A stretch of 63,022 nt of DNA, filler included, from Octopus bimaculoides (taxonomy: Eukaryota), in assembly GCF_001194135.2 (NCBI RefSeq). It is 10 parts of 10 records of this genome, joined end to end, with 100 filler letters (N's around TTAATTAATTAA, not from the genome) between each part and the next. Parts side by side here need not be neighbours in the genome. Positions count along the whole stretch, not along the records: positions 48,972 to 50,192 come from NW_026365867.1; 9 more parts are not named here. One strand, 5' to 3'. A program made the position numbers and the translations under genes. Below, in pieces: positions 42,960 to 50,336 of this stretch (position 1 is its first letter; the number at the start of each line of letters is the position of its first letter). Under the pieces are notes generated by a model that saw only the letters and a list, made by a program, of their open reading frames with translations, did not search any database and was not told the origin of the DNA.

Positions 42960-43981
42960 ACTGTCTACCTGATGACCTTCCATACAACCCCAAATCAGTC
43001 GGACAAGTATACCTCAAAGAAGAATGGACGTGAAATGCCTAGCATACAAAAAAAAAAAAAGAAAAAGAGAAGTAAAAGGAACCATACATGGGTATGTTTC
43101 TCGTAGACTTGAAGAAGATAGTAACATTAGAATGAACCTAAGCTTTTCTTAGACTCGTGACTACTACATTACATCACACTTCGAAGGCGATGTACTTTCA
43201 ATCCGAGAACAGGAGATTGCTAAAAGATAGCTAATCAAAAAAAAAAAAAATGAAACAGTGAATCCCTTGGATTTTCAAGATGCAGCCGTAAATGTAAATT
43301 ATGTCATATTTCTTTGGAAGATATCACACATGGGATTAGCAACTGCTCAAAAATATCGAGGTACTACTCCTTATGCGACATGACGTTATTGCAAAACAAT
43401 ATACAATGCTATTCGGATAAAAGACTGTCCTGGAATAAATATAGAGAATCTCTTTGCTATTGAATATGTACACAAATATCAGCACAAGGAATACTGGTGG
43501 AATATTGCCATCAAAACATCTGTCAAGTGTAAACATAACAAGACGGATATTATAGTTTGGGATAGACAAGAAAAAGTATGTGCCCACATAGAGATCATCT
43601 ATCCTGCTGATGTGTGAATATCTCTTTGAAAATTAAAGAGAAAAAGGTAAATTATGGCAACTGGTTCGAAACCTCCGGCTTCTGTATCCGGATTACAAAT
43701 TTACATTTAAACCAATAATAATTGGAGCAATTCATTTGGAAATAAATGACTAATTGTCAGTTTAGGTAAACTTGGATTTTCAGAAAAAGAAATCAACCAC
43801 CTGATTCGCACATTAGAAATACAGTCTGTAAGTGGCACAGTAAAATTATGCAAGACATTTCTCAGGTATAAAACGTGACGTTGCTTTCGTTATCTACATT
43901 CAAAAGATGGAGTTTCGTGCCTTTGATAGAAACCAGCTCCTTTTTCAGAGGCAGAATTTAAATGATCAAATACAGAAGAGA
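42960..43981 (+). mobile_element. RLE-type (R2/R4/NeSL-like) non-LTR retrotransposon, 3' fragment, pseudogenised
   Basis: Frameshifted translation: HGYVSRRLEED...YITSHFEG..IREQEIA...KCKLCH..EDITHGISNC (CCHC finger)...MRHDVIA...KEYWWNIAIKTSVKCKHNKTDIIVWDR (PD-(D/E)xK-like)...RNLRLLYPDYKFTFKPIIIGA...GTVKLCKTFLRYKT* with the stop at 43876-43878. A ~100-nt 3'UTR follows and runs into (CATA)n. Confidence 0.85.
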
Positions 43982-47316: not shown

Positions 47317-48646
47317 CCCTGCTCGATCTGTAGAAAAGGCGTAGGTAGAAACTCTATAAGATGTACCTAGTATAAGCTATGGACACATAAGAGATGCAGC
47401 AATATCAAAGGAATGCTAACTAGAAGTCGTTGATTGCTTCCATTACCTATGTGACCAAGTCAGTAGTGGGGGCAGGTGCTCTGAAAGTGTAGCTGCTAGA
47501 ATAAGAATAGCCTGGGCAAAGTTCAGAGAGCTCTTACCTCTGCTGGTGACAAAGGGCCTCTTGCTCAGAGTAAAAGGTAGACTGTTTGACGCATGTGTAC
47601 GAACAGCCATGCTACATGGCAGTGAAACATGGGCCATGACTGCTGAGGACATGCGAAAAAGTGCCACACCCTAGCAGTTGAGGGAACCTGTGGAAGAGGT
47701 AGACCCAGGAAGACCTGGGATGAGGTGGTGAAGCACTATCTTCGAACATTAGTCCTCTCTGAGGCAATGACTAGTGATTGAGACCTTTGGAAATATGCTG
47801 TGCTTGAGAAAACCCGTCAAGCCAAGTGAGACCATAATCTATGGCCTCTGCCAGAAGTGTAGCCAGCCCACTGATGCATACCTTTCCTTCATTGGACACT
47901 AAACTCTGCTTGCGAAGACCTGTTGAGGCGAGTGAAATTGAAATTGTAATTGAACCAAATTCGATGACTGGCACCTGTGCCAGTCTAATGCTAACAGCTC
48001 TATCTGAGCATGATCATTGCCAGAGTAGCTGTCTAGCTTCCGTGCCAGTAGGACATGAATAGCACTATTTGAGCATGATCGTTACTAGTAACACCCTACT
48101 GGCACTTGAAAAAAACATTCGAGCGAGGTCGCTCCCAGTGCCGCTGGTCCGACTGCTATGCAGGTGGCACATAAAAAACACCATTTTGAGTGTGGCCATT
48201 GCCAGTACTGCCTGACTGGCCCTCGTGCTGGTGGTACGTAAAAGCACCCACTACACTCTCGGAGTGGTTGGCGTTAGGAAAGGCATTCAGCTGTAGAAAC
48301 TCTGCCAGATCAGATTGGAGCCTGGTTCAGCCATCTGGTTTGCCAATCCCCAGTCAAATCGTCCAACCCATGCTAGCATGGAAAGCAGACGTTAAACGAT
48401 GATGATGATGAATACACAAACTTTTATATATTTTCATATAAACATATGATATGTTTATTTCTCCATTATTCTTTCCTTTATGGAGTAGATGAAATGCTGC
48501 GGGAAGTGGAGAGGGGTTATTTTTGTTCATTCACGTAATCTAATTCGTCATCTATTGTTTTGAAAGGCCTTGACATTGTTATGGTTGGTTTATTGATAAT
48601 TGATAAAATAAAACAAATTAGGCAAAAATGTGTGTGCGGGTATATA

Positions 48647-48871: not shown

Positions 48872-49030
48872 NNNNNNNNNNNNNNNNNNNNNNNNNNNNN
48901 NNNNNNNNNNNNNNNTTAATTAATTAANNNNNNNNNNNNNNNNNNNNNNNNNNNNNNNNNNNNNNNNNNNNGGTAAGCAAGCTACTTACCACACAGCCAC
49001 TCCTGCGCCTATAATAATAATGATAATAAT

Positions 49031-49195
49031 TTTTGACCAGATCCTCAGGAAAGCCAGGAACCTTGTAGATTGCTACTAGATTAAAAAATTTGTGCTGACA
49101 TCAACTGCTCACCTCAGGAAGTTTCTCTCCATTTAATACATAGATGTCTTAGGTCTTTAGTTGAGACCCTGCTGGAAGATGAAATAAAATGGAAA
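49031..49195 (+). mobile_element. R4/Dong-like RLE retrotransposon extreme 3' fragment
   Basis: 49080-49136 translates IKKFVLTSTAHLRKFLSI*, resembling the R4-clade C-terminus (QKxVLLGTAHILRKVL). It is preceded by a (TAA)n-like tract. Confidence 0.55.
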
Positions 49196-49210
49196 TCAAG
49201 CATAAAATTT

Positions 49211-49745
49211 TTAAAATGATGATGATTTCTTTTCTTTTGCCACCAGGGCGAAGGATGAGGGGAACAATACAAAGACAGACATAAAGTGTGGGCATTTACA
49301 TATAAGGAAAGGATTTAGAAAAATATAGCATACATGGTATACATTAAAAGAAGAGACGTATACATAGTATATGACAGTAAGAGAATTAAAAGAAAAAGGT
49401 GATAGTGATGGGGTCCTCCTCATACAGAAGGACATCTATGGATAATCAAGAAACCCCATTCAAGATGTCCCTTACTACCAAGGGCAAGTGCCCTCTCCAA
49501 CCAGACTACCAGCAACAAACACCAAACTTTTCACTAACACCTTGGCCAAAATCTTAAACTCTGTGTTCTGCCATATAAAAGCTTTCCAACAAGTATGCAT
49601 GGAGAGGAATTTTCCACACGTAGATCCATGCTCTCACAAGCCCAATTGGTGGCAGCTCTGCTTTGTGGTAGACTTCCAAATTGGAAACACATAAAAAAAG
49701 AAGTTGATAGTGATGGGGTCCTCCTCATACAGGAGGACATCTAGT
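49211..49745 (-). mobile_element. L1/Tx1-like LINE derivative: RT N-terminal piece fused to the 3'UTR
   Basis: Minus strand reads NTEFKILAKVLVKSLVFVAGSLVGE (L1-type RT), followed directly by 3'UTR gagagggcac...gattatccataga and an (ATC)n tail. Confidence 0.65.
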
Positions 49746-49750
49746 GTTCC

Positions 49751-49869
49751 ACCAAAGTCAGCCTTGGTAGAATTTGAACTCAGAACATGAAGACGGACGA
49801 AATGCTGCTAAGCATTTTTTTCCGGGGGTGCTAACGATTCTGCTAACGATTCTGCCAGCTTGCTACCTT
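49751..49869 (-). mobile_element. SINE family A, 5' half, in the intron just upstream of the TERT exon
   Basis: gaatttgaactcagaacatgaagacggacgaaatgctgctaagcat...gctaacgattctgccagcttgctacc. Confidence 0.8.
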
Positions 49870-49913
49870 TCTCAATAATGATTCGTTAAATTGTTGGTGT
49901 TTATTTCTTGCAG

Positions 49914-50007
49914 GTTTTTATATTTTGTTAAAGTGGATATAAAAAAGTGTTACGACTCTATGAAACATGATGTTTTGATGGAGATAATTACAGATGCCTT
50001 GAAGCAG
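49914..50007 (+). CDS. TERT: Single internal exon of telomerase reverse transcriptase (RT motif A region)
   Basis: Acceptor gtttatttcttgcAG ends at 49913 and donor GTgagt starts at 50008. The exon is 1 nt plus 31 codons with no stop: FLYFVKVDIKKCYDSMKHDVLMEIITDALKQ. It aligns by eye to human TERT [30 protein letters not shown]; the catalytic Asp codon GAT is at 49936-49938. It is too short for the ORF track, and no other TERT exon was recognised. Confidence 0.8.
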
Positions 50008-50336
50008 GTGAGTTATGTGCAGGTATGCGTTTTAGCATGGGAGTGTGTGATAGTGTGGTAGTATGCACATATATGTGTATTTAGTAATAAACTCTAACAA
50101 AGGACCTAATATTAACTTAATAGATTATATACTAACACACACATGCATATAAAGCTGCTGATTGGTTGCAACTCAGTAAGAAATAAGGCGGTNNNNNNNN
50201 NNNNNNNNNNNNNNNNNNNNNNNNNNNNNNNNNNNNTTAATTAATTAANNNNNNNNNNNNNNNNNNNNNNNNNNNNNNNNNNNNNNNNNNNNTATATATA
50301 TATATATATATACATGCACACACACACACACACACA

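Follow-up and report, generated by a model that had tools for sequence, protein, structure and literature searches.

Organization of the locus

The window was a 63,022-nucleotide stretch of Octopus bimaculoides DNA (NCBI RefSeq assembly GCF_001194135.2), and the feature considered here was located on a piece of 1.2 kb at positions 48972-50192 (record NW_026365867.1). Reading this sequence directly, we found a 94-nt open segment flanked by a strong acceptor and a consensus donor (Table 1). The G at 49914 completed a split codon and was followed by 31 codons at 49915-50007 (FLYFVKVDIKKCYDSMKHDVLMEIITDALKQ). The acceptor was ...gtttatttcttgcag/G (in its short form, ttatttcttgcag/G) with the AG at 49912-49913, and the donor was CAG/gtgagt with the GT at 50008-50009. 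The stop-to-stop ORF enclosing the segment (49891-50061) was only 56 aa long. Therefore, the exon would be missing from a default list of ORFs with a threshold of 60 aa. Both the exon of 31 codons bracketed by strong splice sites and its invisibility to the ORF track had been reported in the first-pass annotation of this DNA, and the sequence was exactly as described there.

Table 1. Features of the piece at 48972-50192 and its aligned blocks in the TERT locus of Octopus vulgaris (L001)
Feature	Position in the window	Strand	Position in L001	Identity	Basis or remark
Probable TERT exon with RT motif A	49914..50007	+			Translation, phmmer, PDB matches, orthologues in two octopods
GAT codon, putative motif-A catalytic Asp (VKV-D)	49936..49938	+			PDB alignment
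3' end of upstream intron, polypyrimidine tract and AG acceptor (ttggtgtttatttcttgcag)	49893..49913	+			Sequence
5' splice donor gtgagtta of downstream intron	50008..50015	+			Sequence
Partial upstream intron, 5' end beyond the piece	48972..49913	+			BLASTN blocks; coding signal absent
Downstream intron, first 185 nt	50008..50192	+			Alignable to O. vulgaris up to ~50057
SINE-like multi-copy repeat	49753..49870	-			49753-49843 (up to ~49870) recurs at 35-39 places across 62 kb of L001
BLASTN block 1	49074-49188		43119-43236	88%	Intronic
BLASTN block 2	49762-49818		43314-43370	91%	Intronic, part of the SINE-like repeat common to both species
BLASTN block 3	49887-50057		43379-43539	85%	Includes the exon

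The remaining 1.1 kb of the piece was repeat-rich intron. The SINE-like repeat was located 44 nt upstream of the exon and was partly shared with O. vulgaris at the orthologous site. By eye, it contained words resembling an A-box and a B-box; Rfam and ARAGORN searches of the piece revealed no RNA gene, and this repeat was not recognised as a tRNA. At the left edge of the piece, we observed the end of another multi-copy repeat (48972-49013), which recurred at about 16 places in L001, counting both strands, and was followed by an ATAATA-type microsatellite (48972-49030 for the two together). The stretch at 49189-49761 was without a counterpart in O. vulgaris and could be either an insertion in the window or a deletion in O. 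vulgaris. Within it, two direct copies of a 52-nt sequence (49387-49438 and 49692-49743) stood 305 bp apart at 92% identity and had no match in L001 or in the corresponding locus of Argonauta hians (L002). None of the repeats of the piece matched the A. hians locus. An inverted repeat at 49506-49537 and 49882-49913 (72%) looked like a chance occurrence and was rejected.

Identity of the encoded peptide

The exon peptide read LYFVKVDIKKCYD and showed the TERT form of RT motif A (h-Y-F-h-K-h-D ... Y/F-D), including its catalytic Asp. We searched 1.84 billion representative proteins exhaustively with this peptide (phmmer, HMMER). Just three of them matched at E<=1e-3, and all were TERT or very likely TERT. 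The top match (P0001) was CAI9741690.1, annotated as 'telomerase reverse transcriptase-like [Octopus vulgaris]', with 86% identity and an E-value of 2e-7. This protein carried the Pfam domains TEN_TERT (4.4e-9) and Telomerase_RBD (1.3e-12), both above their cut-offs. The other two matches were a fragment from A. hians (P0002) and a marine-metagenome protein labelled K11126 (P0003), which matched human TERT at E 3e-45. When the O. vulgaris TERT was used as a tblastn query, it matched the 49914-50007 exon at E 2.5e-13. Both this value and that of phmmer lay well outside what chance would give.

Similar evidence came from solved structures. A search of the PDB with the exon peptide produced 17 matches, and the nine best of them were all TERT, with E-values from 2.8e-4 to 0.055. 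The best match was 9swn_A (E 2.8e-4), where residues 524-552 aligned to residues 3-31 of the query and the motif-A Asp was residue 530 of the 884-aa chain. Residues 706-734 of human TERT (7qxa_A) aligned to the same residues 3-31 of the query at E 0.044, placing the Asp of VKVD in register with D712. D712 of human TERT is the established motif-A residue of the catalytic triad. The LYFVKVD...YD signature followed by an amphipathic helix was common to the exon and to solved TERTs such as human TERT (7qxa), 9swn and 6d6v, whereas identity outside the LYFVKVD core was only about 40-55%.

Pfam recognised only the generic RVT_1 domain in the 31-residue peptide, and the score was below the cut-off (E 0.0031; 17.7 versus 29.6 bits). 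Such a low score was expected because the query had just 31 residues. A search of a 5.8-billion-protein index with the exon peptide padded to 41 aa gave no candidate, and we found no protein containing the peptide of the window in the protein collections. The O. vulgaris TERT shared long identical stretches with the query and yet escaped the index search as well, and the negative result was therefore uninformative. A search with the O. vulgaris TERT protein itself found only that protein and one fragment with a TEN domain (P0004).

The first-pass annotation had suggested BLASTp of the peptide against TERT proteins as a check; in the protein collections searched here, the best matches were TERT proteins rather than other reverse transcriptases. 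The earlier assignment, namely that the segment is a TERT exon with motif A and includes the first of the catalytic Asp residues, was borne out, since all significant matches were TERT and the piece was orthologous to the O. vulgaris TERT locus, as described below.

Orthologous exons in other octopods

As references, we considered the O. vulgaris locus L001 (OX597840.1, 10001-62157), which contained the TERT model at L001 10001-52157, and the A. hians locus L002. The piece was collinear with L001 in three BLASTN blocks of 85-91% nucleotide identity, two of them intronic (Table 1). The comparison of introns was based on these blocks, since a global MAFFT alignment was unreliable outside them. 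In this way, not only the exon but also the flanking intron blocks and the SINE-like fragment were found in the same order as in the O. vulgaris TERT locus. Overall, the octopod of the window differed from O. vulgaris by about 11-15% at the nucleotide level, with ~11% in the exon, which marked it as a close but separate species. In contrast, the upstream intron of the window contained ~500 bp more DNA, which was located within 49189-49761.

The orthologous exon of O. vulgaris (L001 43406-43499) was also 94 nt long and in the same phase, and 26 of the 31 residues were identical. It had the acceptor ttatttcttgcag/G and the donor AAG/gtgagtta, and the split codon was AG/G, encoding Arg. The annotated O. 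vulgaris protein used exactly the same boundaries (...KDE-R/CLYFVKVD...AIKK/DSGNF...). Moreover, tblastn located exons for motif 1/2 (L001 40527-40685) and for motifs B'/C, the latter with VDD (L001 51864-52076), in the same locus, where the TERT model was followed by a second gene model with a TERT_C domain. In A. hians, an exon of the same length and phase was located at L002 14529-14622, with the splice sites cattgcag/A and CAG/gtcagt, and adjoined a TERT_C gene model. Each of the two reference loci had one copy of the exon.

The splice signals were well conserved. There was one difference in 20 nt between the window and O. vulgaris in the acceptor region (49893-49913), and TTGCAG was kept in A. 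hians. The donor gtgagtta was identical in O. vulgaris and was gtcagtca in A. hians. Past these signals, the A. hians introns were unalignable to the window.

Compared with O. vulgaris, the exon had six amino acid replacements, all of them conservative (F/C, Y/F, M/I, I/L, L/I and Q/K). The residues LYF-KVD, the D of the Y/F-D pair and HD were invariant. In the C-Y-D motif, both O. vulgaris and A. hians had F where the window had Y, while human and yeast-type TERTs had Y like the window. The estimates were dS 0.26 and dN 0.09 against O. vulgaris (dN/dS ~0.35), and pS 0.88, which was saturated, and pN 0.27 against A. hians (pN/pS ~0.3), each from 31 codons only. At the nucleotide level, the identity of the exon to O. 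vulgaris (89%) was no higher than that of the adjacent intron blocks (85-91%). We consider the substitution pattern to be supportive of a working exon rather than decisive, as selection estimates are weak at 31 codons.

Intron lengths and the absence of neighbouring exons

When four TERT fragments of cephalopod or marine origin were used as tblastn queries against both strands of 48972-50192, no further TERT-like coding sequence was found at E<=10. Pfam searches of the nine other longest ORFs of the piece revealed nothing credible. Accordingly, the earlier observation that no motif T, 1, 2, B' or C exon was located nearby was correct for this piece, where tblastn found only the motif-A exon.

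The O. vulgaris locus provided an explanation for this absence. The intron upstream of the orthologous exon was 866 bp long (the preceding exon ended at L001 42539), the downstream intron was 4,666 bp (the next exon started at L001 48166), and the gene spanned >52 kb. In addition, the window had ~570 bp (49189-49761) where O. vulgaris had ~78 bp. With the leftmost aligned block as the anchor, the preceding exon was projected near 48495, at ~480 bp outside the piece on its left side. On the right, the piece stopped 185 bp inside the downstream intron. Thus, the absence of motifs T, 1, 2, B' and C was expected, because the introns were longer than the 1.2-kb piece. The possibility of very large introns, which had been mentioned in the first-pass annotation as one alternative, was supported by these numbers, whereas the description of the exon as an orphan was not supported: missing neighbours were what an excerpt of 1.2 kb should show given such intron sizes.

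The introns around the motif-A exon in A. hians were ~0.5 and 1.0 kb long, and the whole region (L002 11905-18444) was much more compact. Intron length therefore varies among octopods.

Interpretation and alternative explanations

We propose that the segment at 49914-50007 is very probably a true coding exon from the interior of the octopod TERT gene, which would be single-copy. This reading is supported by the sequence itself, by its homology and orthology, by the conserved splice sites and by the pattern of substitutions. The exon would encode RT motif A, with its Asp serving as one of the three metal-binding carboxylates in the polymerase active site, and also the helix after motif A, which would lead into the TERT-specific insertion in the fingers. 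Through its canonical AG acceptor and GT donor, it would be spliced upstream to the preceding exon, whose last two bases open an Arg codon, and downstream to the following exon, which would begin around DSGNF. Presumably, the source species splices and expresses this exon and has the remainder of the gene in intact form. As a kind of feature it is already known, namely an ordinary conserved TERT exon. In human TERT, motif A is located in exon 6 (PMC3377688).

The most serious alternative was that the source assembly really does carry TERT in broken or mis-ordered form, with the exon on a stray short contig, as had been suggested earlier. The octopod TERT introns were full of SINE copies and microsatellites, and O. 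vulgaris also had a 3.5-kb satellite with a 184-bp unit. Repeat-rich DNA of this kind breaks short-read assemblies. However, the edges of the piece were excerpt cuts rather than assembly features and provided no evidence of contig ends, and the expected intron sizes alone accounted for the missing neighbours. We therefore regard fragmentation as unlikely; even if true, it would be a technical matter and not a biological one.

It was considerably less probable that the segment is a pseudo-exon, i.e. a non-functional duplicate or a decaying fragment of the TERT locus. The view was restricted to 1.2 kb, the intron of the window had gained ~570 bp of extra DNA, and the exon was as similar to O. 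vulgaris as its flanking intron blocks were. On the other hand, the open frame and both splice sites were intact, and the length and phase were those of two other octopods. The replacements relative to O. vulgaris were all conservative and preserved the catalytic Asp and YD, and the pN/pS ratio against A. hians pointed in the same direction. Moreover, the flanks were collinear with a single O. vulgaris TERT locus. With frame, phase and splice sites conserved and the substitution pattern in agreement, the low rank given to a pseudo-exon in the first-pass annotation appeared justified. We assign a similarly small probability to an origin of the exon from another, incomplete locus derived from TERT (a duplicate fragment) or from a TERT gene truly broken up by its repeat-rich introns, and there was no sign of either within the 1.2-kb piece.

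The last alternative, a fragment of a retroelement reverse transcriptase (Penelope-like/Naiad, LINE or group-II-like) flanked by AG and GT by chance, was effectively refuted, because such proteins, though abundant in the library of 1.84e9 sequences, were absent from the matches at E<=1e-3, the group II intron, retron-type and R2 reverse transcriptases in the PDB reached only E 0.25-1.3 in comparison to the much better values for TERT, the orthologous exon was inside a gene encoding TEN, TRBD and TERT_C domains, and no contiguous RT-like coding sequence was located beside this exon on the piece, the exon being single-copy in the reference loci. The generic, sub-cut-off RVT_1 match in Pfam was compatible with a retroelement. 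In addition, Penelope-like elements, including the Naiad families found in Octopus spp., form the sister clade of TERT (PMC8557442). They share the general RT motif A with its Asp. However, these elements are intronless and repeated and are without TEN, TRBD and TERT_C, whereas the exon of the window was bounded by introns and syntenic with TERT. The earlier conclusion that the motif was of the TERT type rather than of the Penelope or LINE type was in agreement with the phmmer result.

Returning to the octopod TERT exon as the preferred reading, its value is mainly in annotation. In our search of the literature, no work on the structure of TERT genes in cephalopods came up. The analysis provides exact exon coordinates for a gene that is poorly handled by automated pipelines in cephalopods, and it illustrates that a TERT exon of 31 codons can be recognised from raw sequence alone. 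For studies of how short-lived, semelparous octopuses maintain their telomeres, a correct model of TERT in cephalopods would be modestly useful.

Observations on the O. vulgaris TERT locus

The annotation of TERT in O. vulgaris looked imperfect, since the gene was divided between one model of 634 aa and a TERT_C model of 202 aa (OX597840.1). The motif 1/2 and motif B'/C exons that we located in this locus by tblastn were apparently unannotated. If the annotated junction is right, then the intron upstream of the motif-A exon had an apparent GC donor at L001 42540-42545 (GAAAG/gcaaga). Most of the intron downstream of the motif-A exon was occupied by a 3.5-kb tandem array (L001 43944-47485) that consisted of 19 copies of a 184-bp SINE-derived unit with 98% matches. 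A shorter array of the same unit was located at L001 52208-52758.
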